A DNA stretch of 62,893 nt, filler included, from Guillardia theta CCMP2712 (Eukaryota; Protista; Cryptophyta), in assembly GCF_000315625.1 (NCBI RefSeq). It is 6 parts of 6 records of this genome, joined end to end, with 100 filler letters (N's around TTAATTAATTAA, not from the genome) between each part and the next. Parts side by side here need not be neighbours in the genome. Positions count along the whole stretch, not along the records: positions 33,658 to 45,196 come from NW_005434285.1; 5 more parts are not named here. One strand, written 5' to 3'. Below the pieces are notes generated by a model. The model was not told the DNA's origin. It saw only the letters and a program-made list of their open reading frames with translations, and searched no databases. Below are positions 8,650 to 45,196 of this stretch, piece by piece. The position numbers were made by a program, and so were the translations under genes. The number at the start of each line of letters is the position of its first letter. The first letter of the stretch is position 1.

Positions 8650-8725
8650 CGTCTCACACAGCTGGGCTTCATTGCAAGCGTCTCACACAGCTGGGCTTCA
8701 TTGCAAGCGTCTCACACAGCTGGGC
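8650..8725. repeat. 29-bp tandem repeat (~2.6 copies) just after the 5-phosphatase stop
   Basis: cgtctcacacagctgggcttcattgcaag at 8650, 8679 and partially at 8708. Confidence 0.9.
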
Positions 8726-13450: not shown

Positions 13451-13959
13451 CTGCCTGCCTGCCTCCGTCCCTCCGTTCGTCTACCTGTCTTGTCTGCCTG
13501 CCTATCCGTCTTGTCTGCCTTCCTGCCCCCCTGTCTCCCTCCCTCCCTCCCTCCGTCTGCCTCTCCTCGTCATCCTTGACTTCGTCTTGCTTGGGTTGGG
13601 CTCAATTTGTACTAGTACAATAAATTCGCAACCTGAAATAGGGCCTCCTCCCCCTGCTCCTCCCCTGCCCTCCTCCCCCTGCTCCTCCCTGCTCCTCCCC
13701 TGCCCTCCTGCCCTGCCCTCCTGCCCTGCCCTCCTCCCCTGCCCTCCTCCCCTGCCCTCCTGCCCTCGCCTCTTGCTTCTCTCCTCCCCCTGTTCCCTTC
13801 CCTCCTCCCCTCTCCCGCCCTACAGACCTGGTCGTTCCCCGGCTGTTCTGTTTCTTCATCTACCGTGAGCGTCAGTTTTCTTCACCTGCTCTTCCGTATC
13901 ATCTCAGTGTCAGAGGCTCGTGAGGAAGTTGCTGGTGGTTGCAGCAGAGCGTCTCCATC

Positions 13960-16900
13960 ATGGCGAGGGTCTTGAGGTACGGAGCCAAGGTGTCGCTCTT
14001 TGCCGAGGAGATGAAGGGCTTCGTCGTCAGCGACGGTTTCATACGCCAGCATGTCCACGTGGAGTGTCTGAGAGAGGACGAGCACAACATCCCTGACTTC
14101 GAGGTGAGCTAACCCAAACTTCCTCTCCCTGCTGCTCTCCTTGCTCCCCCCCCCCCCCCCCCCCCCTCCTGCCTCCGTTCGTTCCCTCACCGAGATAGCA
14201 GAGAGCTTTGTTTCAAGTCCTCCCGAGACAAGAGAGTCACGCCACGCGCATCTTGAGCTCGTACCTGCAGTCCTTGCAGCTTCCCAGCGGAGTGAAGCCA
14301 GAGACTTTCTTGAGCGGGGAGGAGCAGGAGCGATACAAGCAGCTGGTAAGCCTCGCCGAGCAGGAGCGGCACCTGAACAAGCAGATGTTGAGGACCTTGT
14401 ACGGCAACGAGGTGCTGGCAGGGGATTTCATTCAATTCAAGCACATCAGCAGCGACCGGTACCTGCGGTTTCTCTTGGGGGCCTCCTCGTCCTCAGAGTC
14501 GATGGAAGTGGAGCTAGACGACTCCAGCAACGCCTCCGCCTTCTCTCTCACCTGCCCCTACACACGCGACGCCGGCAAGACGCGCATCTCGATTCAGGAT
14601 CACGTGTACATCATTCCCGACCGATCGCTTCCTGGGTTCCTCGGCTGCTCCTCGGAAGACAAGGAGCTCGCGTTCCAGTGCAACCTCAACTCAGTGGCGC
14701 TCAAGGTCGTCGACGGCCCGATGAAGTTTCTGCTGCACCTCTACCAAGACGCTGAGACGAGCGTCAAAGACGCCGAGCTCTCCGAGGGTCTCCGTGCTGG
14801 CAGCTTCCTCCAGCTGTTTCAGCCCAGCTCGAACTGCCTGCTGGCTGCTGTCCCCATTCATGGGAGAGACTTCGCCATGGTCGTGTCGGAGCGGGTGGAC
14901 TCGCTTCAAGACGGCTCCCTCCACTCCCTCTGGGTCGTCGAGCAGGTCGACCCCTCCGTCGGCGGCTCGTTGAGCATCAAGTCTTCCTTCAGGCTCCGCA
15001 ACCTGGCGACAGGAGGATACCTGTGCCCGAGCAAGACCAGCACCAGCGAGCTGACGCTTATGGCCAAGGAGATGCGCTACTGGAGCAACGAGTCCGCCGA
15101 CTACCTCACCCGCTCCTGCTTCGAGTTCCACCGCCCCATGGAGAGCGACGTACCAGACGAGGGGGTCTCGGAGCAGGTTCTCTTCTGGTTGTTCTTCGGC
15201 TCGGAGGAGCATGGAGGTTACCTGCACGTGAGAGAGAACGAGCACGCGCTCCTCCTGCCCTCGCCAGGATCCAACCAGGGAGTTTTCTTGTCTCCAGTGA
15301 GCCAGGAGACGAGGCAAACGGCGACGCTTGTGCTGCGAGCTGAGAGACTGTTGGCGGCGACGCTGCGAGCTGAGAAAGAGCCGCGAGCTCTGACGTGTCA
15401 AGAGATGATCGCCGTGATCGAGGTCCTCAAGCTCCTCAGCCTCCGCTTGAAGGCTCGCCTCAAGGACAGCAAGCACCTGCTCGTCTTCCAAGGCTTCTTG
15501 CGGCAGAGCGGAGTGATACGGATGGTGACGGGGGCGGCGAGGGAGCAGAAGGAGGAGGTGAAGCTGCAGGCTGCTAGCAGGGACGTGCGAAGCGTGTTTC
15601 AATCCGCAACTCTCAGCTACAGCATGGAGTTTCTCTCTGCTGTCTTTCAATTCTTGCGCTTGGCGATGGCGAACAACGAGGCCGTGTGTCAAGAGGTCTT
15701 CCTCAGGCTGCCTCTCGACCTCCTCCTCCTAGACCCAGCTGGCTTCAGTTCTCATTACCTCAAGTCCAACTTCATTCAAGACCTCGTCGCTTGTTACCTC
15801 CAAGTCTACCAGACCAGCTTCAGTGCCTTGTTTGACATCAACTTCTCAGTGTTGGAGTCGTTCCTCAAGGTCCTCGAGAACCATCACAAGGCTGCTTCCT
15901 TCGTCTTCGCCATCTTGCGAAGTCTTCTCACCTACAAGAACGTCAAACTCCGTAAGAATGCGCAGACTGTTTACAGCTTGCTCTTTGACATGCAAGGTTC
16001 GATCGCGCTGCCAAGAACAGCCATGCTGGATGGGTCCGTGCATGTTTGTCTCGACGTCGATTGGAAGGACAAAACCAAGTGGCGCAAGGCTGAAGTGCTG
16101 GCGGACGAGGAGGACACGAGGGAGTACTACAACGAGTTCGAGTTGCTGCTGTCGGAGCTCTGCCAGAACCAGGAGTGGTTTGACGCAGACGTGCAGAAGC
16201 GCTTGGAGCGAGAGCTCTTCCTCTCCCTCGAGGCCGGCGCTCTCATCATCGCCGACGAAGAGCTTCCCCTCGCTGTCCGCACCTCCCTCTCTCTCCTTGT
16301 CTCCACCGTCTACATCAACAAGGCGGAGCGCGAGGGCGACGCGATCCTCGACGGCCTCTTCGTCCTCTGGCCGAGGATCAGGGGTGACGCTACTGACAAG
16401 ACTGGGAGCGGCTTAGGGGGGTCCGGGGACTTGGCAGCGGTTGTGTCGCAGCTCAAGGGAAGCATTCTCAAGGCTCTTCGTGCCGCCCCTTCTCAGGTCC
16501 TCGCGCTCCTCCTCCTCGCGCTCCTCCTCCTCGCGCTCCTCCTCCTCGCGCTCCTCCTCCTCGCGCTCCTCCTCCTCGCGCTCCTCCTCCTCGCGCTCCT
16601 CCTCCTCGCGCTCCTCCTCCTCGCGCTCCTCCTCCTCGCGCTCCTCCTCCTGGGTCGCTGACCAGCTGGCAGGGACGGGAGGGGTTGGAGTACTTGGGGG
16701 CTCAGACTAGGTTGCTGCACAAGTTTCTGGAGGCAGGGCTCTACGACAAGGAGATCGCTCAGGCCTTCCATGCTCCCTCCCTCCCCGACCAGCCCCGCAG
16801 CCTCCTCCTCACCCTCATGCACGAGCTGATGGCTGCTTTCTTCCATACCTGGACTCGCAACGAGCCTGCGCTCCTGGACAAGGTCGCAGCAGGCGCGAGC

Positions 16901-19900
16901 AGGAGAAGAGAAGTGACTTGCAGCAGGTGAATGAGATCAGAAGGCTCATTCTCACGACCCTCAACCTGCTCTCAAAGGTGGCTTCTGCTTGCCTTGTCTT
17001 GTTGTACCGCAGGTCTTCTCTTGACTCTCTTGAAGCTCCGCATGAAAGAAAAACTGCGACGCGTGCTTCAGCTGTGCGAGGAAGACTTTCACTTGTGCTC
17101 GGGGCACATGGCGGACAACGACAGCAAGGTGAAGTACAAGTTGATGATGAGAAGCCTCTGACGTCTGTTCCTTGTCAGGTCGCGTTCGGCATGTTTGACA
17201 ACGCGCACGTGCAAGGCTTGATGGGTCAGCTGCGAGTAGAAGGGCGCGACATAATGCGGGTGATCGAGTGCGTGACGAGGAGCGAGGACAAGGCGTTGGA
17301 GAAAGAAGCAGCGGAGCTGATGCTGAGGAACCTCGACGAGCCAGAGCTGCTGCTGTTCGAGCTGCGGCAGATGAAGATCCTAGAGAGTGAAGTCATGTCC
17401 GAGGACCTCTCCCTCCTCCGAGACCTCGCGGATCGCCTGCTCCGAAGCTCTGACTTTCTGTTCCTCCTCCACCATCACGTGCGGGGTCGACGGCAGGAGA
17501 CTAGATACGACCTGCTGATACAAGGCTTCATCAACAAAGTCGCGCCTGCCTCTGCTGTAGAGCTTCTTGGCTCTCCTGCTGGTCTGACGGAACGAGCAGG
17601 TTCGAGAGCACGTGCTCACCCGAAGCCCTAGCGAGGTGATGCCGCTGGTCCCGTCGCTTCTCTCTGACGCCTGCAGGTCTTCACTTCCTCCTTCCCTGCC
17701 CTCACGTCGCACGGAGAAGAAGCGTTCGCAGCTCAGGCGGCGGAGCTTCGGTCGATGCTGCTGCTCATGGTGCTGCGCTTGGGGGAGGGAGCGAGCTGAT
17801 GGGCTGGCAGAAGGAGAAGGTCTGCGAGAACCAAACGATCCCGAGGGCCGTGCTGGAGCACGCGACCTCAAGCGTGAGCGTATGGAGGATAGCGGTAAAA
17901 GCAGTGAAGATGGTGTGGGAGAATGGAATCTCTAAGGCAAGTCTGATGGAAACTATGCTGATGTGATGCTGATGTGATGCTGGTATGATGCTGATGTGAT
18001 GCTGATGTGATGCTGATGTGATGCTGGTATGATGCTGGTATGATGCTGGTATGATGCTGATGTGATGCTGGTATGATGCTGATGTGATGCTGGTATGATG
18101 CTGGTATGATGCTGGTATGATGCTGGTATGATGGTGGTATGATGCTGGTATGATGCTGGTATGATGGTGGTATGATGCTGATGTGCTGGTATGATGGTGC
18201 AGGAGGAGCAGACTGGCTACTCTCTGGCACAGACTTGCATCGACATGCTGTTAGAGTACGCGAGCAGCAATGATTCAGCGTCCATGGACATCTTGACAGA
18301 CGTCGACCTTCTCCTCGACATCCTCGCAAGTCCTCAAGGTCTGCCCCTTCGCCTCGACTCGCTTCTCTGTCTCCTCTTCCGTCATCGCTACGAGGCCTGC
18401 CTCAGGTTCGGCCAGACCGTGATCAAGCGGGTGGTAGCGCTCATCTACCAGGAGGGGAGGAGGTTTCCCTACCTCAAGGTCCTCCTCTCCCTCCTCTCCC
18501 CTGGCGGCCGCGAGGTGAAGCAGAACCAGTCGCGGACGTTCAACCTGCTCAAGTTCCAGCGAGAAGAAACGCTCTTCCTGCCTTGGAGCGAGAACGAGAT
18601 CCTGAGCCTGCAGAGCATGTGCCGTAGCCGCGAGTGCCTGGCGGTCGAGGACGTGGAGAGCTTCAAGCGATGGAACCAAACCTCTTTCTTCGACCCGGTG
18701 TGGAATCAGAACCTCCTCCTTGACTCTCAGGTACTGCAAAGTGAAAGACGAGAGGGAGGGGGAGGAGTTATGCTGTATCGCTGCTTACAGTCTTTACAGC
18801 TCATGTATTCCATCTTCTCCTTCGAAGTTCTTGCTGAGTGCTGCAAGGGCAAGAGGAGTCACAAGATGAAGAAGGAGCTTGCGACGATGATCAGCAGTCA
18901 AGTCTGTTGCGATCTCATAGTCTCCAAGATCTACATGGCAGACATCAAGGTGTCTGTCCTCAGGTTCGTGCTCGAAGTGCATCTCAACCTCGACGAGCCT
19001 CTGCATCGCAAGCCAGACCCTCATCTCATGAGGACGCTCCTCTACACTGGTCGCATGCTGCCCGCGGTGCTGAAGCACAACTCCAACCATGGCTACTGCC
19101 ACCCGCAGGAGTCGCTTCCCTTGTCCCTCCTCCTCTCTCAGCTTCTCCTCCGCCTCTCCTCGCGGCTGCTGCAGCTGCTCAAGCTCGAGGACCTCCCCTC
19201 AAAGACGCTGAGGGACCTGACGCGGGCCTGCGGGAGCCTCGTCACCTTCTTGTGGCAGAATCAGCTGGAGTCGCTGGTGGGGGAGTGCCGAGACTTGTTC
19301 AAGCAGCTCAAGGACAAGCCCTCCCTGCTCAACGAACACACGCGCTTCCTCGTCGAGACCCAGCTGCATACCGAGCTGAGCTCGGAGAGCGCTGCTGCCC
19401 CCTCGGCCACCTTCAAGCCCAAGATCGCAGACTTCGCGAGCTCCTTCATCCATCGCTTGTCCGCGCTCATGGCAGGACGAGAGGCTGAGCCGATCATGGA
19501 GGGCTCGTCTCAGAGCCTCTACCTCGACTTCATCCTCAAGCACGTGAGAAGGAGCGAGCTGGAGCCCCAGCTGCTTCAGCGTCTGATGATCATCACCCTG
19601 CGATGCCTTGAGAGCCTCTCGCCGCACGAGCTGAGAAGGGAGCGCTGCGGGCAGGTGGTCTCCTCGCTCCTCTACCTCATCTCGTCGGGTAGGCACCACA
19701 AGCAGGCACTCCGCACCCTCAACTCGCTCTTGCGACGTCCGCTGCCGCAGCTGCGGGTGGAGTGCGAGCGATACTTGAAGAGGACGGAGGTCGGGTTCGT
19801 GTTCCCGACGCTGCACGCAGAGCTCAGCCGGTGGATCATGCAGCGGCAGTCCAGGGGGGGGGAGGAGGACGTGGAGCTTTCAGCCCTGGCTGAGACCCTC

Positions 19901-33557: not shown

Positions 33558-35656
33558 NNNNNNNNNNNNNNNNNNNNNNNNNNNNNNNNNNNNNNNNNNN
33601 NTTAATTAATTAANNNNNNNNNNNNNNNNNNNNNNNNNNNNNNNNNNNNNNNNNNNNCCAGGCTAGCCTGTTTGTACCGAGGTATAATTGAGTTTTACCG
33701 GGTTCAAGGATTTTTGTATCAGGATCCCCTTTCCCCCTCCGTACTAAGTTTGTACTGTCAATGTCAGCAATTCCCGTGGGCTGGCAGTGCTCCCTCGACT
33801 ATCACCTCTACACCACCGGTATGTTTCACAAGAGATCATGTCAGGGTAGGTAGTCTGATTTCAGGAGTGGGCGAGAATCATAAAAGTCTTGGGCATTCTG
33901 GTAGTGGAATTGACGCTGAAAAGCAATCTCTTCGATTACCGTTAGGATTCGAACGCGTGGTCAAACAGCACCCACCTGAGCTAGAGTCTTGTACTCGAGT
34001 GGGGTGGCTGATGTGGGTTTGAATCGCCACGCCTTTGACCCCATTATTTCCATTCCAAACCTCGTTGTCGCGTAGGGTGGGTCACACTCTCGAGCGTTGC
34101 GAGTTTTACGGTTCGAATTTGACCAAGGTTCACCCTCTAACCCCCAGTCTCTCAATTTCAAATGGGAAAATGATGGGTAGGGGGTCCCCCCATTTGTCTC
34201 CACTCCAGCCCCCCCCTCCCTCGACGAACAAGAGATGGTGAGATTGTCCCATTGACGCGCGTGAGGACGATAATGAACAATGTGAGACTTCGAATCCTAC
34301 CATGCATGGATATGCAGGAAAAGAAGATACGGTTACCTGTCTATTTGTGATGACTTGGTCTCTTCTGTGAAATTCAAGAAGTAGAAAGGGATTTGAACTC
34401 AACATCTCATCCTCAACATAAAGCCAATGCAACATCTCTTTCATTACCACGCTGCCTCAAATTGCACTAAAACCACTTAGATCACTTAGCTTGGGCTGNN
34501 NNNNNNNNNNNNNNNNNNNNNNNNNNNNNNNNNNNNNNNNNNNNNNNNNNNNNNNNNNNNNNNNNNNNNNNNNNNNNNNNNNNNNNNNNNNNNNNNNNTG
34601 TCAAAGTTGAGCAAATAATTCAAATTCTTGCACAATGACGATTGATTGAAAATGTTCAAGTGTAATTTCAGAATGGACAGAAGATGGCATAGCAACAGCC
34701 GATCTCAGCATGTATTTCGAAACTGTGATTGTAAGCAAAAACATCATACGAAATAGTNNNNNNNNNNNNNNNNNNNNNNNNNNNNNNNNNNNNNNNNNNN
34801 NNNNNNNNNNNNNNNNNNNNNNNNNNNNNNNNNNNNNNNNNNNNNNNNNNNNNNNNNNNNNNNNNNNNNNNNNNNNNNNNNNNNNNNNNNNNNNNNNNNN
34901 NNNNNNNNNNNNNNNNNNNNNNNNNNNNNNNNNNNNNNNNNNNNNNNNNNNNNNNNNNNNNNNNNNNNNNNNNNNNNNNNNNNNNNNNNNNNNNNNNNNN
35001 NNNNNNNNNNNNNNNNNNNNNNNNNNNNNNNNNNNNNNNNNNNNNNNNNNNNGTGCAAATGCCATCTTATTCTCTCTGCAAATCCTTTCTCGCAATTGCT
35101 CCAACCATGCAAATTCAGGAAAATGTCTTGTACACTCCGAGATAGTATTGCATGTTTGACATCTAGGCTGTGATACCAGGGATCAAGCGATATATAGAGT
35201 AGGCAGAAGCTGTATCAGTCATGCAAACTTGAATCTGCATAACAACAGTTTCTGAAGATTGTTTATTTGCCAACAAATAAAAGATGCTTCACCATGATGG
35301 TGGTTACTGTGGTCCCTTGTATACAACAGCTTTGAAGCAGCACTGTCCTGGTAGTAGCAGTTCACAGAACATAAAGCACGCAAAGGACAGGAGAAACTTC
35401 GGGAGGATGTCACAGTAGACCATAACACTCTGAGATACACTTTTCAAAAGAAGGAGATGCAAACAAATAGAATGATGTGAGGATCCTAAATGAATCATCA
35501 CGGTTGGCAACAAGGTTTGCATTTTCACCAAAGATAATCGAAACTCTACTGATCACAACAGGAATGACGATGAGTATGTGTAAACAATCACATCTGCTAA
35601 GCGTTGCTATTGATTGCCAAGCAGAAACACACTTACAACAACCTGGAATAGATCAT

Positions 35657-36068
35657 CCTTGTGGTTCTTGCAGGATCATCTTCATGATAGCGGATTCCAC
35701 AACCAGGAGTTAAAAGAACCCTTAAGCCCAGGGTGCTATTTGTCCATTGAGCTTCAATCGAACTCTGAGGTCGAGATAGGAGGGAACTTTGAATCTCCAA
35801 GATCAGGGGTTCATGCAAAATGGAAGGTGGTACATCTTGAAAGTCAATGTTTTCAATGGAGGACATTTTATCTCCATTTCTTCTGGTCTCGATGCCTCAC
35901 AACGCAGCTGATCGTGAGCTTATGCGTATTGCAACCCCAGGAAAACATCATCGTTGGCGCGACATGCGTGCCCGACCCATTGCGTCTGATTACAAAATGT
36001 AAGGATCTGATTTGACATATCCGAAATATTTGGACATAATTTGAAATTTGAAGGGTATGTTTGTTTAT
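35657..36068 (-). pseudogene. Diverged partial copy of 40422-40848 (5' part and promoter of the unknown ORF)
   Basis: Near-identical peptide MSSIENIDFQDVPP...DDPARTTR. An extra 39 bp puts a stop after MSRQR, and ~50 bp upstream are missing. Confidence 0.85.
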
Positions 36069-36076
36069 TTGCCTGA

Positions 36077-36269
36077 ACTGTTCGTTTGTTTGTTTGTCTC
36101 TTCTGTATGTCTGTTTGTCTGTCTGTTCTGTGTATGTGTGTTTGTCTGTTGCTGTTCGTTTGTTTGTTTGTCTCTTCTGTATGTCTGTTTGTCTGTCTGT
36201 TCTGTGTATGTGTGTTTGTCTGTTGCTGTTCGTTTGTTTGTTTGTCTCTTCTGTATGTGTGTTTGTCTG
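36077..36269. repeat. 74-bp TG-rich minisatellite (~2.6 copies)
   Basis: ttcgtttgtttgtttgtctc starts at 36081, 36155 and 36229. Confidence 0.9.
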
Positions 36270-36788
36270 CGTGAGCAAAACACAGTTTTTTGTTTTGCTC
36301 ACTACCCCTGCAGAGTCAGTGAAACCCTACGACCATGCAGCAACACCCCCAAAAACACAAGTTGAACGTGGGGTGCGCTTATTATCATATGAAAAGGGGG
36401 TAGGTAGTGGGAACACAGCCCCTTTTCTGATCAAACCTCAAACACAAAACGTAGTACCTACCCATTCACTCCGGCCTACCCTACCAAATATCATGATAAA
36501 TCGGTATAAAGTGTAGGTAGGGGTAGTTTTCCACCGTGTTCAGGGGTGGGGGTTATATCCCTACTATATTACAACCTGTGCAATTGTTCTCTACCATGTG
36601 TGGAAATATTCCATGTCAAGGGCTCAACATTTGTTCTAAAATTTCATACTTGAACTGTAAAGTCGAGACCAAGCTGAAATGTTCAATCAAATTGCGGAAT
36701 CATTAGCAACAAATAGTAGTTTTCCCGGACAAAATCCACCCACTGATTGCCATTTTTCTCGCAACGTGTTCTCTCTACCGCAGTGCAA

Positions 36789-39470
36789 ATGTCGTGTGGA
36801 AGATTTCAATCCTTTTCATCCATGTTGTTACCGCCGCCCTTTGGATGGCTACGACATGCAGCGAATTGTTCAAGCTTATCCTGTTCGAAGTATGGACAGC
36901 TACACGATGGCATTCCTACAAGGCTTGAATCCAACACCTTATCGTCGTGCGATGAAGCTACCTGGAGGGGACTTGAACATTTTGCATTGCTGGAAGGCTT
37001 CATGGAGAAAACTTCTGATAAGCCTGATGTTGCTTCTTTCTTGTACTACGTTGCAAACGGATATCTTTTTTCGCCATCGTCTGTTGTTGGAAGTACTCTG
37101 CAAGGCTACTTCAATTGCGCGAGTCGGTTGGCACACTTGAGTGCAGAATATGAAAAACTCAAAAGTGAGCATCAGCGCATGAAAGATGCAATTCCCAACA
37201 TTGACAAGGTTCTAAATTTGACATTTGAGGACATTTGGAAAGCAAATTTCCCTCAGGAGATATGCCCGGCAAATCTGGAAGACATTTCCAATGATTCTGC
37301 AGACAAAAAGCTAAGAATTCTCAAGGACATTCTTGCTGAAATAACTCCCACCTCCAATTTGCTCTCTGGAGGTCTGCAACGCATGACAGGCTTGAATGGA
37401 AGTGGCAAAGCTTTCGGCCATCTCAGTGATCTACGTCAAAGTTCCGATTCACTGTTTCACCTGGAGTCGTTTATGAATGGTTTTGCACAATCTGCATCTT
37501 TTCATTTGAAAAAGCATGCCAAGACCAACAAGAGGATAAAGAAAGCGTTGCAAAAAATGTACAACTCTGTTTGTGCGAGAATAGACGAGCTTTCTCTTAT
37601 GACTTTGCAAAATGGACTGACTCACAAGGCGTTGGACGATCTTCACAAAATGATGAAGGAAAGTGGGCTTCAAGTTATGCACAGTCCTACGGAAATCAGC
37701 AGGACGAAGGCCAAGCAAAAAAGATTAGTAGAAGAAAAGGTTGATGGAATAGTCGAGCTTCCTGGGGGCCATGGAGCAAATCTTATCAAAGTGACGGAAT
37801 TGTTTTTCATGAAGCTTGTGCAGTCGACACCAGAATTGATGTCGGTCAAAGGATTGAAGTTGTCCACCTGCTTCGATAGCGTCCGACTAGGCTGTTCAGC
37901 TCAGTCAGGAACAGAGCATACAGACTTTGCAATGAATTTGATTGGAGTCTGGGATGATGCCGTGCAGTTTGCAGACTGTTTTTTCGATCAAGAAACAAGA
38001 TTAAATTCTCCTGCATCGTATGTCACATTTTTACTGATCTATTTGCAAGATTCAATTGAAAATATCAAGGCAAATCTTTGGGATGAATATGGACTTGACT
38101 TGAAGGCATTCTTAGGCGAACTGATCTGTGCGGATGGAAGGAAGATAGCTGCTGGGCTGCATTTTTACAGGGACGACAATGGAAATTTGACGTGCATCGA
38201 TGGTCGGAAACGGTCCATGAGTGACCCTGCTGCTCATCCTGAGCTCATCATTCCCCTCTCAATTGAATTTCGTGGCGACCTCAAGGGCTTGTGGCATCTT
38301 GTCGGCATGAAAGGTAATTGCTGATAGCATGGTTGCCTCAGTGTCCTTTCTAAACGTCATTTTCGCATAGGTGCCAAGGGAGATCAATGCTGCTTGTACT
38401 GCCATGTAAAATCAGCTGAGCGTCATCTCATCTTCGATATCGCGGAGGTTCCTGAGGACATCACTGTCGATGATTTCTGCAAGGAAAGAGCAATTCCAGC
38501 AGATGTGTTCTGGTTGGTTCACGAAGTGCTAACCAATGGAGGGCAATGCAGTATCGTACATCAATGCATGTTCGGTGGAAAATGTTTGAGCAAGGCAGAC
38601 GTGTCTAAGCTGAATGTGTCAAAAAGGAGCAAGACACTGAAACGTGGGCAGAAGGTGGTCGTACTGAAGCAGGATCACGGAATGGAAAGAGAACATGAGG
38701 TTTTGAAAGAACATGGACTTGATTGCAAAAGCCTTGTCATTTGTGTTCTCCATCTCAAATTGCGGATTGTATACTGTGTCCTCAAGTGTGTATACAAAAC
38801 AGCTCAACGAAAGCACCGAACTAAACAAGCTCAAAGCATTTTACACAAGTCTGGAATCAAGTATAAGTTGGAAGAAAACAATGGGAAGCTTCCTAACTTG
38901 ACAGGCAAACAGTGCGACGATTTGTTGAACCGAGCTATGGGACCCCTACTCGACCTCCTTTATGATGATGTTGATGAGCGAAATAGATACACTGAGATCT
39001 ACAAAGAGTTGTCATCCGTACTTTCGACATTGTCTTGTACGCATGTTTCCCATCTTACCGATGAAGACATTGGTACATTAGCGACGAGGATCAATTCATT
39101 CGTTATCAGATACGTCGTAGAATGCGGCGATAAGGAACTCTTCAGTGCTGTGTATTTTCACTTTTTATCTGCCGGACATGTCGCAGAATTATTCCACTAT
39201 CATCTTTCAGAACGAAACGTTACTTTGGGTGCTCTGAGCATGTCAAGTTTGGAACTAAGGCACAGAATTTGCGGACGACCTGCTTGGAGAAAAGGATTGA
39301 TGGAAGGCAATGCAGCAGCAGGTAGAAAACGATCTCATGAAAACATGACCGAGGATCATGTAGATACAGCGACTCTGCAGCAAATGTCTAGGAATATGAG
39401 CAATTTTTTTGCATTCAGAAATTTGCTAACGTCAGGATTAGGAACGATTGTAAATTTGTACTACTCTTAG
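36789..39470 (+). CDS. RAG1/Transib/Chapaev-like DDE transposase, ~874 aa, intron 38314-38370
   Basis: Ordered motifs KLSTCFD (D 37875), FRGDLK (D 38277), CLYC, ICVLHLKLRI, LTGKQC..LL, YFH..GH and LGALSMSSLE (E 39252). Removing a 57-nt GT..AG intron fuses ORFs 36747 and 38394 in frame (MKG|AKGDQCCLYCH). Confidence 0.85.
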
Positions 39471-39485
39471 TTCAGTGCCCATGAT

Positions 39486-40691
39486 TTATAACACTCTCTG
39501 TTGCCTCTTTTTCTTGTCTCGCCAATCAACCCATTGGATCTTGCCCATCATGCCACCAATGCTACCGACTGTTTCAAAACCCACGGACATATTCCCCCGT
39601 TTGTACGACAAATACATCGGTCCGCCCACAAACATTTGTGTCAGATTTTCTTGAAGCTTCGGTGTCGACTTGAAAGGGATATCTAACACTTCTCTGAAAG
39701 CTTTATCTTGAACGATGTTCTCTGCAAATATCCATGTGAATTGTGATTTGTTCCTCTTCGCCTTGACATGTTTGAAAAGACGAGGTGGAATTAAACGAAG
39801 CAAACTCCTCATTGAAATATTCTTGCAAGTAAAGTCAAGATCTTGTGTGCCTGCTTTCTTGAATGTACGACTCCTGGCTGTGAGCCATAGCTGCATGCTG
39901 TTCTTAATCTCTTCGATGTCTGAGACTGTCTTGAGGTAACCGGATGGTGTGAGCACTGAAGCTTCGATGCTGGAAGATACTATCTTCTTAATTGTTTGTT
40001 CAGGGTCTTGCAATTTGAAGTACGAAATCTCACAATAGGGCTTTCGACGATTGTAGTTGTCTTCATTGAAGAAAATGTACCCTACAACATCGATAATCCT
40101 TGATTGCGGTGCTTGAGACGACATAGAATCAAGAAGGAATGGATACTGAATAGTTAGCACATCCTGAATCAGGTCCAGGTCCACTTCTTCCGTGTACACT
40201 GATTGGAAGCATGTTCTCGCATTCAGGTCCAGGTCCACTTCTTCCGTGTACACTGATTGGAAGCATGTTCTCGCATTCATCGACCTCACAATCTGCCTCA
40301 TGGACTTGTTTTGTAAGCCATGCTTTGAAATATTTGCATCAACTTTGTCCAAAAGATTCTTGTCATACAACATGAAAATCTCCACCCTGCAATCGGAAAC
40401 CAAACGTTTGATTATACCGTACCTTGTGGTTCTTGCAGGATCATCTTCATGATAGCGGATTCCACAACCAGGAGTTAAAAGAACCCGTAAGCCCAGGGTG
40501 CTATTTGTCCATTGAGCTTCAATCGAACTCTGAGGTTGAGATAGGAGGGAACTTTGAATCTCCAAGATCAGGGGTTCATGCAAAATGGAAGGTGGTACAT
40601 CTTGAAAGTCAATGTTTTCAATGGAGGACATTTTATCTCCATTTCTTCTGGTCTCGATGCCTCTCAACGCAGCTGATCGTTGGCGCGACAT
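39486..40691 (-). CDS. Unknown ~400-aa protein convergent with the transposase (possible BAH-like region)
   Basis: Uninterrupted ORF from ATG 40691 (MSRQRS) to the stop at 39486, with an in-frame 54-bp duplication. Function unrecognised. Confidence 0.7.
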   Translation of the reverse strand: MSRQRSAALRGIETRRNGDKMSSIENIDFQDVPPSILHEPLILEIQSSLLSQPQSSIEAQWTNSTLGLRVLLTPGCGIRYHEDDPARTTRYGIIKRLVSDCRVEIFMLYDKNLLDKVDANISKHGLQNKSMRQIVRSMNARTCFQSVYTEEVDLDLNARTCFQSVYTEEVDLDLIQDVLTIQYPFLLDSMSSQAPQSRIIDVVGYIFFNEDNYNRRKPYCEISYFKLQDPEQTIKKIVSSSIEASVLTPSGYLKTVSDIEEIKNSMQLWLTARSRTFKKAGTQDLDFTCKNISMRSLLRLIPPRLFKHVKAKRNKSQFTWIFAENIVQDKAFREVLDIPFKSTPKLQENLTQMFVGGPMYLSYKRGNMSVGFETVGSIGGMMGKIQWVDWRDKKKRQQRVL

Positions 40692-40836
40692 GTGCCCGTC
40701 AACAGCGCCAAGGCCCGTCGCCGTGAATAATTTATGCGTGTTTTGCCAAACCCATTGCGTCTGATTACAAAATGTAAGGATCTGATTTGACATATCCAAA
40801 ATATTTGGGAGCACTTTGAAATTTGCCAGGGGGTGT

Positions 40837-42741
40837 ATGTCTGCTTATCCCAACAAAACAATGCATTGGCAGAAAACAGACGAGGAACGATCTGCGCAGT
40901 TGGAGGTCAATCGAAGAAGAAAACGGGAGAGGAGGGCCCGCGAAACAGAGGAAGAACGATCTGCGCGGTTAGCAAGCCAACGAAGGAGACAATCGGAGAG
41001 GAGGGCCCGCGAAACAGAGGAAGAACGATGTGCGCGGTTAGCAAGCCAACGAAGGAGAGAATCGGAGAGGAGGGCCCGCGAAACAGAGGAAGAACGATGT
41101 GCGCGGTTAGCAAGCCAACGAAGGAGACAATCGGAGAGGAGGCAGAGGGCCCGCGAAACAGAGGAAGAACGATCGGCAAGTATGGAAACTCTGCGAAACC
41201 GCAAGCGCAGAAGTCGGAGTGCTGTTTACAATGTGTATCAAGAGGCTGCACACAAGAAAATTTCAATACGAGAAGAGCTGATGATCTACCCAGTGGACAT
41301 GCGGTTTCTCAATGAAGTAGAAAAGCAGTTTGATTTAACAAGAATGGTTGGCTCGGGGACTTTCGGGGAGGTCTATGAGGCCTACGACAGGTTAAATGAT
41401 CGTCGAGTAGCAATCAAACGATTATTACCATTTCAAACCATGGATGCGCATAAGAAGGAAGCAAACTTTATATCAAGCTTGCATGGAAAATCCAACATTG
41501 TACAGCGTGTGCAAAGTCCGCCACTGGCGCCTAATGGGATAATCCTTGTCGAGGAGCAGCAGGCTTTGATTTTTGAATACTTCGAACATGACAGTCCCTC
41601 AGATTACGTCAAAGATTTGACCATCAAAGAGATTACCCACTACATGAAGAATTTGTTTGTAGCATTGAGGTCTGTACATGCCCTCGGGATCATACATCGA
41701 GACGTGAAATTGAATAACTTCCTCTACGACAGAAGGAACAAGAAGTACTTGCTTGTGGACTTTGGGCTGGCAGAGAAGAAAATGCAGAAGACTGCTCTGG
41801 GAATTTCCACAGGACAAACGCCTTCACCAGGCCGCAGAACAACGTCAGGGTCAATGAGCAAGTATTTCCCTGCCACGAAGAGCAACGGCTACATCTTGCC
41901 CTCTGAGAACCTGGCGCAGCAGATTGCAAAGAGGCGAAGGTTGGGCGTCAGAAGGACGAACGCATCGGAGACCGTGAGGAACTCAGGGGTCAAACTGAAA
42001 CGGCTTCCAGTCAACCGCGGGGGAACCCGGGGCTACCGCGCGCCCGAAGTGCTCATGGGCAGCCACCACCAGACGAAAGCAGTGGACGTCTGGAGCGCTG
42101 GGGTGATACTGCTTACCCTGCTGTGCCGGCAGACACACTGCTTCCAGTGGTTCCGGCATGACAATGACAACTTGGCGGTCATGGAGATCTACGGGTACGC
42201 CCGTTGTGTAAGCCTTGAAGTAAGTGCGCTGGTCTGACTGTATGGTCTGAACAGCTTGCGCATGTACATCAAGAGCATGGACGCTGAGTTCCAGCACAAC
42301 TATGGGTATACGGGTCAGTACAGGGATAAGATCAGAGATGTCATCGAAGATTTCAAGCTCGACGTTGAAGTAAAATTGTTGTCGTTGTTGCTGCTGTTGT
42401 TGTATCATGAGGATGAGGATGAGGATGAGGATGAGGATGAAGATGAGGATGAGGGTGAGGGTGATATGGTGGCGGGACTCTTAAGCTGGGGATGCTAACT
42501 TCATGTCATTCAGTTCGGACCATTGGAACAGTATCTGAGCTATGCCCGCGGTTTGGAGCAAACATGGCGGACCTTATCAAGCGCCCTGAGCGAGGATGCG
42601 GGATGCAAGGGCTGGCTGGAGGTGGAGGAGAAACATGCGATCTGGGACTTCCTCAACCGCTGCCTCGACATCGATCCCCGCACGAGGATGACTGCAGAGG
42701 AGGCTCTGAAGCATCCCTTCCTCGCTAGTGGTCTTGAGTAA
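40837..42741 (+). CDS. CDC7-like Ser/Thr kinase with N-terminal 23-aa STPR-like repeats; introns 42195-42254 and 42370-42513
   Basis: GSGTFGEVY, VAIKRL, EYFEHD, HRDVK.NNFLY, LVDFGLAE, a long insert, NRGGTRGYRAPEVL..S.HQT.AVDVWSAGVILL and CLDIDPRTRMTAEEALKHPF. Both introns restore frame. Confidence 0.88.
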
Positions 42742-43808
42742 ACCGTCTCTCCTCTGGCATCTCCCAGTCTCTCGCGATCAGCATATCATCGCAGTGACCT
42801 CCCAGGCTTCTCTTTCCCTTCCAACCCCTACTCTCCCATCTCCTTCCCACCTCCCCTGTCCCCTCCTCTCTCCTCCCTCAGCCTCACAAACTCCAATGAC
42901 ATGTTATAATCGCCATCCCACTGGCTGTTGAGAGCATTTCACAAGACTCAAACTGTTGTGGAATGCATTGGGAGAAGCCTCAAAAAATGCAATCATGGCA
43001 AAGCACCAGCAAGTCTCTTGAAATATGCTTCATATACAACCGACGAAGCATTCTGGTACAGGAAGCTAGGCCGTCATCGCAATAAGGAGAATAGCATTTC
43101 CTTCATGTCTTCGAAGGTTGCCTCTCTGATCGATTCCTTTCATGTTTCCCTTCTGAAAGTGTGAAAACAGCTGATCAGGGCTTTGGCACATCAGAATTGA
43201 GGTGTTTCAGTGCAAGTATGACAAGGAAAGTCACACAATTATTGGATAGCGTGAGCATGCAAATTTGAATGCATACCTTACACTATTACAAGTCAATGCA
43301 CAGTTACAACTATGCTCACAATGCTTCAAAGCATATTTGCATTTACACGCAACTCAACGAACTGAGATTCAAATATTTCCTTTCCACAAAATTCTTATTG
43401 CAACATGATATGCATCATCCTCAAAACACTCTGCTTAAAGGAAATGCAGTCGTTTTCCCACATGATACATTCAAATCTGGTCAAATTTGGCATCAAAAGA
43501 TGTTCTTGTCATCACATTGATGTATGTATCTCACAACATGGTGCCCACAGGGCGCGATCTGCTTGAACGTGAGTCTCCGAAACTGACATAGTGTTCAACA
43601 TTGGTACATTCGGTACAACGTTTAAAAATTCCAGAAATGGCACGGTGCTGGCAGGATCCCACAATTTGAAATGGCGTGGTTTGACAGAAGTAAAACATTT
43701 CAAGGAAAATTTTCACTTTGAAATCCAAAACCTATTCATTAAGAAAAATCCAGGTAGAAAAAGACCCCGCCGAGACGGAATAAAATCCAGTTGAGAACCC
43801 AATGGAAT

Positions 43809-45196
43809 GGGGCCTGATCTCTCCGGGCGGCCGTGACCGGTCAGCGGACCGTGTCAGCAGGCCCGTGACATGTCAGCCGGCTGACAGGGGCCGTGACCCG
43901 GCTGACAGGCTCACCTGACCGGTCACGTGACACATCACGTGACCGAGACAAGACTTTTTTATATCGCAGATCCAAAAACCCATAGGACATTTCTCCCAGG
44001 GGGAAGAAAACCTCCCTTGACCCCCCTGTTTCTCGACGGATCCTGCCGGCCGGGCCCGTCAGTAGACCGACTGCAGCCTTCAGCCCCGCCTCAGACCCCC
44101 TGGAGGCCCGCCAGGAGGCTAAGTGTCCGGAGATTGGCCGGGGGCCTGATCTCTCCGGGCGGCCGTGACCGGTCAGCGGACCGTGTCAGCAGGCCCGTGA
44201 CATGTCAGCCGGCTGACAGGGGCCGTGACCCGGCTGACAGGCTCACCTGACCGGTCACGTGACACATCACGACTCCTTCGTTATGGATCGAGTATATCGC
44301 AGATCCAAAAACCCATAGGACATTTCTCCCAGGGGGAAGAAAACCTCCCTTGACCCCCCTGTTTCTCGACGGATCCTGCCGGCCGAGCCCGTCAGTAGAC
44401 CGACTGCAGCCTTCAGCCCCGCCTCAGACCCCCTGGAGGCCCGCCAGGAGGCTAAGTGTCCGGAGATTGGCCGGGGGCCTGATCTCTCCGGGCGGCCGTG
44501 ACCGGTCAGCGGACCGTGTCAGCAGGCCCGTGACATGTCAGCCGGCTGACAGGGGCCGTGACCCGGCTGACAGGCTCACCTGACCGGTCACGTGACACAT
44601 CACGTGACCGAGACAAGACTTTTTTATATCGCAGATCCAAAAACCCATAGGACATTTCTCCCAGGGGGAAGAAAACCTCCCTTGACCCCCCTGTTTCTCG
44701 ACGGATCCTGCCGGCCGGGCCCGTCAGTAGACCGACTGCAGCCTTCAGCCCCGCCTCAGACCCCCTGGAGGCCCGCCAGGAGGCTAAGTGTCCGGAGATT
44801 GGCCGGGGGCCTGATCTCTCCGGGCGGCCGTGACCGGTCAGCGGACCGTGTCAGCAGGCCCGTGACATGTCAGCCGGCTGACAGGGGCCGTGACCCGGCT
44901 GACAGGCTCACCTGACTGGGACACGTGACACATCACGTGTCCGAGACAAGACTTTTTTATATCGCAGATCCAAAAACCCATAGGACATTTATCCCAGGGG
45001 GAAGAAAACCTCCCTTGACCGCCCTGTTTCTCGTAGGAACCTGCCGGCCGGGCCCACCAGTAGACCGACCGCAGCGAAGAGACCCGCCTCATACCGAACT
45101 CGGCCCGCCAGGAGGCTAAGTGATCGGAGATTGACCGGGGGGCAGATCTATCCGGGCGCTTCGTGATCGGTCAGCAGCCCGTGACTGCAGGACCTT
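43809..45196. repeat. 332-bp satellite array (~4.2 monomers), same family as 1-4875
   Basis: Same monomer; the last unit degrades toward the contig end. Confidence 0.97.

Follow-up and report, generated by a model that had tools for sequence, protein, structure and literature searches.

A probable transposon of Guillardia theta with a RAG1-like transposase fold, a convergent partner gene and a kinase cargo at a satellite site

The region discussed here belongs to the cryptophyte alga Guillardia theta CCMP2712. It lies in a window, that is, the whole stretch of DNA analysed, of 62,893 nucleotides (nt) joined from six parts of this genome, and positions without a further label are counted along that window. 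The region forms a whole scaffold of 11,539 bp (NW_005434285.1, 33658–45196), which carries GUITHDRAFT_149489. The scaffold most probably holds one copy of a cut-and-paste transposon of G. theta of about 10.1 kb, which begins 34 bp to the left of 33658, ends at 43809, unites a RAG1-fold transposase, a conserved partner and a kinase cargo, and has a satellite as its target. An initial annotation, made from the sequence alone, had offered a multi-gene cargo transposon or a domesticated recombination module as readings of a unit that began at 35657. The first agrees with the terminal inverted repeats (TIRs) that enclose transposase, partner and kinase in three copies. The second is not supported, in view of the TIRs, the presence of several copies and the lesions peculiar to each copy. 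The unit does not begin at 35657 either; it starts beyond the left edge of the scaffold at 33658 and ends at 43809.

The element ends, which the initial annotation had failed to find and had suggested defining from alignments of copies, could be located in this way. Sister copies are present on JH993271.1 (L001) and JH993240.1 (L002), and the 90% cluster of the transposase has three members, on scaffolds of 48,088, 40,583 and 11,539 bp. The three 10-kb copies align through GGAATG, the tip of the right TIR, and diverge at once outside it. In all three, the transposase, partner and kinase are bounded by 27-bp TIRs (CATTCCATTGGGTTCTCRACTGGATTT). The right TIR occupies 43783–43809 and reads CATTCCATTGGGTTCTCAACTGGATTT on the minus strand. 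The left TIR, CATTCCATTGGGTTCTCGACTGGATTT, has one mismatch relative to the right one and is found at 631–657 of L002 and at 16682–16656 of L001, on the minus strand. The start of the scaffold in the window (33658) aligns to position 665 of L002, and the left TIR lies 34 bp beyond the scaffold edge, where it is visible in the two sister copies. With gaps included, the element measures 10,112 bp in L001 and 10,166 bp in L002. In the latter, no long inverted repeat other than the terminal pair (30 nt, 93% complementary) spans the element in 10.25 kb. No TIRs were found close to the genes in the window, and the end of an internal direct repeat (36050/40825) was rejected as an element end, as no inverted repeat matches it.

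The 10-kb copies belong to a wider family of elements. On the 280-kb scaffold JH993064.1 (L003), an element of 5,103 bp is bounded by a 29-nt inverted repeat, CATTCCGTTCCAAGTCCCTTCTGGAATTT (27/29 complementary), at 8655–8683 and 13729–13757, which starts with CATTCCG. Its right end is homologous to that of the window copy (L003 13688–13737 against 43741–43790, 80% identity, E 2e-5). Compared with this 5.1-kb type, the 10-kb type has an extra left block of 2.6 kb, which includes a duplicate of the partner 5' end and promoter, and an extra right block of 2.9 kb, which includes the kinase. A third element, of 2.6 kb (L001 614–3231), has the TIRs CATTCCATGGCATTTWCTAATGC, also given as CATTCCATGG, and a partner paralogue as its sole gene. 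In a rearranged copy on a further scaffold, L004, homology ends exactly at the CATTCC tip of the TIR. The tips read CATTCCA or CATTCCG in six independent ends, and those of the 10-kb element are of the form 5'-CA..TG-3'. Outer CGTCACAGWGTC motifs around the L003 element, which resemble the heptamer of a recombination signal sequence, were rejected as termini because the L004 homology stops at CATTCC and the window lacks the motif.

The subterminal regions were compared between the two larger types (window 33658–33760 and 43741–43809; L003 8655–8760 and 13660–13757). The left and right regions are unlike each other, and each is kept between the 10-kb and 5.1-kb types. TTGTACCAG is common to the left ends of both types, while in their right ends a second CTGGATTTTT-like motif lies about 55 nt inward. 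This arrangement suggests asymmetric ends with several putative binding sites.

The satellite is the target of the element and not a part of it. Targeting of satellite DNA had been raised as a possibility, and it is now supported by three copies and one end of the small element, all at one exact satellite site. In the window, the satellite has a period of 333 bp and 4.2 copies (43809–45191). When 60 nt of the left flank and 60 nt of the right flank of L002 are joined, they reproduce the satellite over 120/120 nt, with no gap and no duplicated base. The junction, GGAGATTGGCCG^GGGGCCTGATCTCC, is an imperfect palindrome in the 332-bp satellite. The same left junction is found in L001, and the same right junction is found in the window. 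The orientation of the element to the satellite is reversed in L002, but the insertion is at the same phosphodiester bond as in the other copies, and the left end of the 2.6-kb element is found there as well. No 5-bp target-site repeat was seen at L001 or L003. The L003 flanks have at most a 2-bp GT repeat, which could be due to chance, and no similarity to the satellite; this element sits in unrelated GC-rich DNA.

Several further properties of the satellite were observed. Its GC-rich array follows the right TIR (43810–45196, unit of 332/333 bp) outside the element, and its presence after the kinase stands as first described; the distance from the last kinase exon is 1.3 kb and not about 1.1 kb. 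The monomer contains internal 30-nt inverted repeats (83% complementary), and the palindrome at the insertion site has the form GGAGAT..ATCTCC. Open reading frames (ORFs) of 107 amino acids (aa) recur in every unit, because 333 is a multiple of 3, and they are very likely non-coding. Scans of the element and the satellite with Rfam and for tRNA gave no match. The 2.6-kb element has a satellite block on each side; about 39 nt of satellite are missing from its right flank, which then meets an assembly gap.

The transposase of about 850 aa is encoded on the plus strand in two exons, 36856–38313 and 38371–39470, separated by a 57-nt GT..AG intron (38314–38370). Exon 1 carries the first two catalytic Asp candidates; exon 2 carries CxxC, three conserved His residues and the catalytic Glu candidate and ends with the stop codon TAG (39468–39470). 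The same exon join is made by the GenBank model P0002 and by the transcript-derived paralogue P0015. The exons of the spliced proteins were searched one by one, and P0002 was used for alignment and folding. The transposase had no Pfam match at E ≤ 0.1, and neither phmmer nor a family profile run against the Protein Data Bank (PDB) reached RAG1, BbRAG1L (the amphioxus protein) or HzTransib. For the transposase and the partner, nothing was found in the ESM Atlas features or in a word-indexed search with profiles. When 1.84 billion representatives were searched exhaustively with HMMER, ten relatives of the transposase were returned, all from G. theta, its relative Hanusia phi or a few ENA metagenome contigs, while scans of JGI metagenome contigs and IMG/VR found none. 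In the alignment of three full-length divergent transposases (26–58% identical), D343, D477, E783, C496-x2-C499, H616, H752 and H758 of P0002 are invariant. We take D600, D708 and E962 of mouse RAG1 to be the counterparts of D343, D477 and E783, a presumed residue-by-residue match.

The assignment of the enzyme came from structure. The AlphaFold model of P0002, built from an alignment of 11 sequences, has a mean predicted local distance difference test (pLDDT) score of 57.7, with core segments at 70–88. When this model was compared with the PDB by Foldseek, the top 49 matches were all RAG1, BbRAG1L or HzTransib (E 4.5e-7 to 1.8e-3), and the 50th was the P element (E 0.1). Re-scoring of Foldseek's top 1000 chains by VIA-align gave a Z score of 11.8 over 347–375 residues, which placed residues 240–816 of the model on RAG1 459–998. 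HzTransib was matched with a Foldseek E of 7e-5 and a VIA-align Z of 8.9–9.9. An exhaustive VIA-align run over 48,161 representative chains, made without Foldseek, likewise ranked RAG1, BbRAG1L and HzTransib as the top six (Z 8.9–11.4, 323–368 residues); all lower ranks were helical-bundle matches of about 100 residues. In the ESM Atlas, a shape search found clusters of vertebrate RAG1 and of plant CACTA (Transposase_21) at similar template modelling (TM) scores. The moderately confident model contains a RAG1-type core with an RNase H domain, an inserted zinc-binding domain and a C-terminal domain. The protein named as a transposase in the initial annotation thus has a RAG1-type fold by Foldseek and VIA-align. 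It is read as a member of the RAG1/Transib-CACTA clade by its predicted fold, and not as Transib proper, because RAG1 and Transib are the sole solved members of the clade.

A related gene, P0007 (342 aa; L005:10001–11029), matches only the N-terminal 260 or so residues of the transposase (28–32% identical), and neither a catalytic core nor a partner lies near it. The gene is either the remnant of a decayed copy or an N-terminal domain that was retained separately. Transcripts of Hanusia phi encode fragments similar to P0007.

The partner gene (39486–40691, minus strand) runs from ATG to TAA and encodes 401 aa. It is identical to GUITHDRAFT_122309 (P0001) apart from an 18-aa gap (BLASTP 94%). 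Its stop lies 15 bp from that of the transposase in a convergent, tail-to-tail arrangement, exactly as the initial annotation described for its ORF of about 400 aa. The view that this gene accompanies the transposase gained weight from distant relatives. In L003, a transposase paralogue (49–64% identical) and a convergent partner paralogue (44%) have overlapping 3' ends. In the ENA metagenome contig L006, an intron-less transposase of 868 aa (24% identical) is followed after 57 bp by a convergent gene of 383 aa that aligns with the partner (21%, tblastn E 1.4e-8). The tight convergent linkage of the two genes inside TIRs, which is characteristic of RAGL elements, is therefore present here, with 15 bp in the window, an overlap in L003 and 57 bp in L006. 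The paralogue in the 2.6-kb element (25% identical) stands alone, without a transposase.

The partner was supposed not to be a RAG2, and no likeness to RAG2 is visible. It had no match in Pfam, including RAG2 and Kelch, in the PDB by phmmer or profiles, or in the Atlas. Its AlphaFold2 model (pLDDT 38) predicts mixed helices and strands and not the all-beta propeller of RAG2. With this poor model, the best Foldseek matches were the bromo-adjacent homology (BAH) domains of Sir3, Orc1 and TNRC18, at a non-significant E of 0.13–1. The metagenomic partner matched a chain of the restriction endonuclease R.NgoVII (4rd5) by phmmer, at a non-significant E of 0.27; we take this chain to be its B3-like DNA-binding domain. 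A stretch 'VVWFYRK', noticed by eye in the metagenomic partner, is presumably of the kind found in BAH domains. The BAH and R.NgoVII matches are leads and not findings.

A spacer of 145 bp (40692–40836) separates the divergent start codons of the partner (40691) and the kinase (40837), as had been reported, and it is presumed to be a bidirectional promoter. The kinase gene on the plus strand consists of exon 1 (40837–42194), a 60-nt GT..AG intron (42195–42254) and exon 2 (42255–42498), whose frame carries on from exon 1 in phase 2 and which has an acidic (D/E) tail at its end; further splicing is possible. The fusion of STPR repeats with a CDC7-like kinase that the initial annotation recognized was found again. 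Exon 1 begins with 4.3 copies of a 23-aa repeat (69-nt period, 40874–41174), which match the STPR domain of silkworm FMBP-1 (5d23) in register with a phmmer E of 4.7e-4, with a composition bias. The tandem basic repeats thus resemble the DNA-binding repeats of FMBP-1 and would qualify as STPR-like. The kinase domain that follows is clear (Pfam Pkinase, E 7.6e-35), and its closest solved relatives are human CDC7 (E 4e-32) and yeast Cdc7 (E 2e-30), compared with 7.5e-22 for CK2. The CDC7 match falls into two blocks with an insert of about 75 aa between them, so the protein appears to be a CDC7-type kinase with an insert.

The kinase is confined to the 10-kb element type and is absent from the 5.1-kb relative and the metagenomic pair; it is therefore the cargo of one sublineage. 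For the proposed three-gene system, this means that the order recurs in the three 10-kb copies, with all three genes inside the TIRs, whereas L003 and L006 keep only the transposase–partner pair, and a role of the kinase in transposition is not supported. Kinases near the L003 element were rejected as counterparts of the cargo, being generic kinases that are about 20% identical and lie outside its TIRs. Four copies of such a gene, 82–94% identical to one another and two of them inverted, flank the 5.1-kb element (L003:638–8239 and 16946–18404).

The copies also differ in their state. The three 10-kb copies are 98.5–99.3% identical, with substitutions of 0.7–1.5% (77–169 between copies) and distinct indels. 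All three genes are open in L001. In L002, the partner is broken by a 36-nt palindromic insertion and the transposase frame is continuous. In the window, the transposase has a 7-nt deletion at 36949, which causes a frameshift after about 31 codons; RNA contigs carry TCAACTA after this position, and the frame is continuous in L001 and L002. The window partner contains an in-frame 54-nt tandem duplication (40169–40276), which corresponds to the 18-aa gap mentioned above.

Expression can be judged from Logan contigs of three studies. Both introns are removed, that of the transposase (57 nt) in contigs of three runs, as in P0002, and that of the kinase (60 nt) in contigs of runs X1, X2 and X3; therefore, the contigs are derived from RNA, and the transposase and the kinase are expressed. 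The contigs cover the partner too, in which case the strand is not determinable. Transcripts of the paralogue P0015 and of Hanusia phi also exist. About 6% of one raw RNA run was read, and the few reads obtained from it contributed no further evidence. In run X16, raw RNA reads over 41650–41849 cover only the most conserved block of the kinase, with 95–99% identity and fixed differences at 41739, 41778 and 41779. These reads probably come from a paralogous kinase and not from the window copy.

These observations can be joined into a mechanism. A dimer of the transposase would cut at the TIRs and integrate the element by the cut-and-paste chemistry of transposases with an Asp-Asp-Glu (DDE) motif. 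The partner would serve as an obligatory accessory subunit. Its most likely task would be the choice of the target, or the attachment of the complex to satellite DNA or chromatin, by way of a putative N-terminal beta-barrel domain. The kinase would be a host-type gene that was captured; it possibly affects local chromatin or replication, or possibly is just carried along.

Several points weigh against the description of the region as a satellite-directed transposon with a RAG1-fold enzyme. No sequence method (Pfam, phmmer or profile against the PDB) assigns the transposase to a family. Its AlphaFold model is of mediocre quality (mean pLDDT 57.7, TM score 0.2–0.3, root-mean-square deviation 9–10 Å), and therefore the fold call rests on the exclusivity of the matches and the conservation of the motifs. 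The partner model, with its pLDDT of 38, is unreliable. Classic hallmarks of Transib and RAG are missing, as the tip is CAT and not CAC and there is no 5-bp duplication. Every copy lies near a scaffold end in a gapped short-read assembly, so local misassembly in the satellite flanks is possible, and in L001 the right flank shows a rearrangement 8 nt beyond the TIR. Neither an empty site nor an excision footprint was seen in the copies compared; therefore, mobility is inferred from the copies alone. Finally, the RNA status of runs X1–X3 is a tool's guess backed by the spliced introns alone.

Other explanations have to be weighed against the same data. With slightly less than an even chance, the transposase and the partner form a true two-gene transposon in which the kinase is a recent passenger without a role, and there is no three-gene system. 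This reading agrees with the lack of the kinase in L006 and in the 5.1-kb relative, where the neighbouring kinases are only about 20% identical and outside the TIRs, and with the GC content of the kinase, which is 0.50 compared with 0.43 in the transposase and partner. The reading also fits the frequent capture of genes by CACTA-type elements. However, none of the three copies has a broken kinase frame, whereas two have a damaged transposase or partner, and the kinase is both transcribed and spliced. It shares the 145-bp divergent spacer with the partner, and its predicted DNA-binding-type repeats would suit a chromatin-directed role.

It is improbable that the genes are a host cluster, that is, a domesticated recombinase module in subtelomeric or pericentromeric duplications with incidental inverted repeats, copied by duplication of satellite blocks. 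One of the copies faces the other way with respect to the satellite and has its junction at the same bond, and a different type of element with related TIR tips occupies the same site. The L003 relative has homologous TIRs in unrelated, satellite-free DNA, the rearranged L004 copy stops exactly at the TIR tip, and each copy has its own lesions. Such a cluster would nevertheless account for the location of all three copies in the same satellite near scaffold ends, for the low copy number and for the lack of a target-site duplication and of an empty site. An assembly artefact, in which three collapsed or chimeric versions represent one locus, is more improbable still. Short-read scaffolds with N gaps, copies at scaffold ends and small indel differences would be in line with it, whereas the 77–169 substitutions between copies with their distinct indels, the different registers and orientations of the flanks and the support of the sequence by independent runs from several studies are not.

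The transposon reading can be compared with known systems. RAG1L/RAG2L elements have already been described in another alga, Aureococcus (Tao et al. 2022, PMC9435367), and G. theta is not mentioned in the supplements of that large RAG/Transib survey. The element resembles the RAGL/ProtoRAG elements and the vertebrate RAG1–RAG2 pair in the RAG1-type fold, in a tail-to-tail second gene that is kept with the transposase within a few bp, and in its TIRs. Unlike them, it has a partner without a RAG2 signature, CAT.. tips in place of CAC.., no 5-bp duplication and no detectable sequence similarity to RAG1. Transib and RAG are defined by 5-bp duplications, CAC tips and detectable sequence similarity (PMC1131882). 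With Transib, the element shares the fold, as shown by the HzTransib match. Transib has a single gene, 5-bp duplications and a TIR with a CACAATG heptamer and a nonamer, whereas the G. theta element has two or three genes, no duplication and a CATTCCR tip. Neither the Transib sequence similarity nor the 5-bp duplication nor the CAC heptamer with an A-rich nonamer was found, and CA..TG alone is common to both.

There is agreement with the broader CMCT clade, whose D, D, E, CxxC and His motifs and CA..TG tips are all present. The spacing of the His pair is 5 in G. theta, compared with 3–4 in the clade, and the 2–5-bp duplications made by the clade are absent from the G. theta satellite insertions. 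The CACTA termini and 3-bp duplication of CACTA/EnSpm are not found. A second protein and captured genes are features of CACTA elements as well, and fungal members have a chromatin enzyme (TET/JBP); the G. theta partner is unrelated to TnpA or TET/JBP. The family is filed as a new, strongly divergent CMCT lineage outside the named superfamilies, in a comparison made without Repbase sequences, so that an earlier Repbase entry is possible. With regard to the target, R1/R2 and Pokey in ribosomal DNA and Dada in snRNA/tRNA genes use one exact position of a tandem repeat unit as a safe haven. The G. theta element likewise occupies one exact position of such a unit; its target, however, is a non-coding satellite without an RNA gene, and the enzyme class differs.

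What the element may mean goes further. RAG1 works only with RAG2, and the origin and reason of this partnership are a long-standing question. A tentative idea, more doubtful than the passenger reading of the kinase, is that a cryptophyte lineage with the RAG1 fold independently gained an obligatory non-RAG2 partner that reads DNA or chromatin through a BAH-like or other beta-barrel domain. This partner would direct duplication-free integration at one satellite palindrome, and the DNA-tethered CDC7-like kinase would be a third functional component. If this were true, the system would be an algal analogue of the RAG1–RAG2 division of labour. The family, which lives in a unicellular alga, agrees with RAG1–RAG2 in the fold of the enzyme and the tail-to-tail order of the genes, whereas its partner is apparently unrelated. 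This suggests that recruitment of a partner is a recurrent solution for RAG1-type enzymes and offers a second system in which partner function can be probed. The use of one exact satellite site, the lack of a target-site duplication and a chromatin- or replication-type kinase cargo, all three united in this family, are unusual for a DDE transposon. The family escaped all sequence-based annotation, and its proteins are named 'hypothetical' in GenBank.

The remaining parts of the window copy are as follows. The left arm (33658–35656, plus strand) is non-coding and contains two assembly gaps (N runs at 34499–34598 and 34758–35052) and no ORF with a family match. Both gaps lie left of 35657, and no N runs were found inside 35657–45196, in agreement with the earlier description of this part as free of gaps. 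An internal duplicate of the first 90 or so codons of the partner and of the divergent promoter region lies at 35657–36050 on the minus strand and forms a direct repeat with 40422–40825 (identity of 99% in the first 259 nt and of 90% in the following 82 nt). This direct repeat also occurs in L002. Between the duplicate and the transposase, there is a TGTT-rich minisatellite with a 74-nt unit and 2.6 copies (36078–36269). The right arm (42499–43782) leads from the kinase to the right TIR, and over its last 50 or so nt it is homologous to the subterminal sequence at the right end of the 5.1-kb relative. The GC content is 0.43–0.44 in the transposase and partner, 0.50 in the kinase and 0.63 in the satellite. 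Lastly, the rearranged copy (L004:5476–14011) is a fragment of a 5.1-kb element in which transposase codons 1–478 are joined to an inverted left end. It lies at the centre of a 2.6-kb inverted duplication (99.96% identical), within a tandem duplication of MAP65-like genes of about 14 kb.

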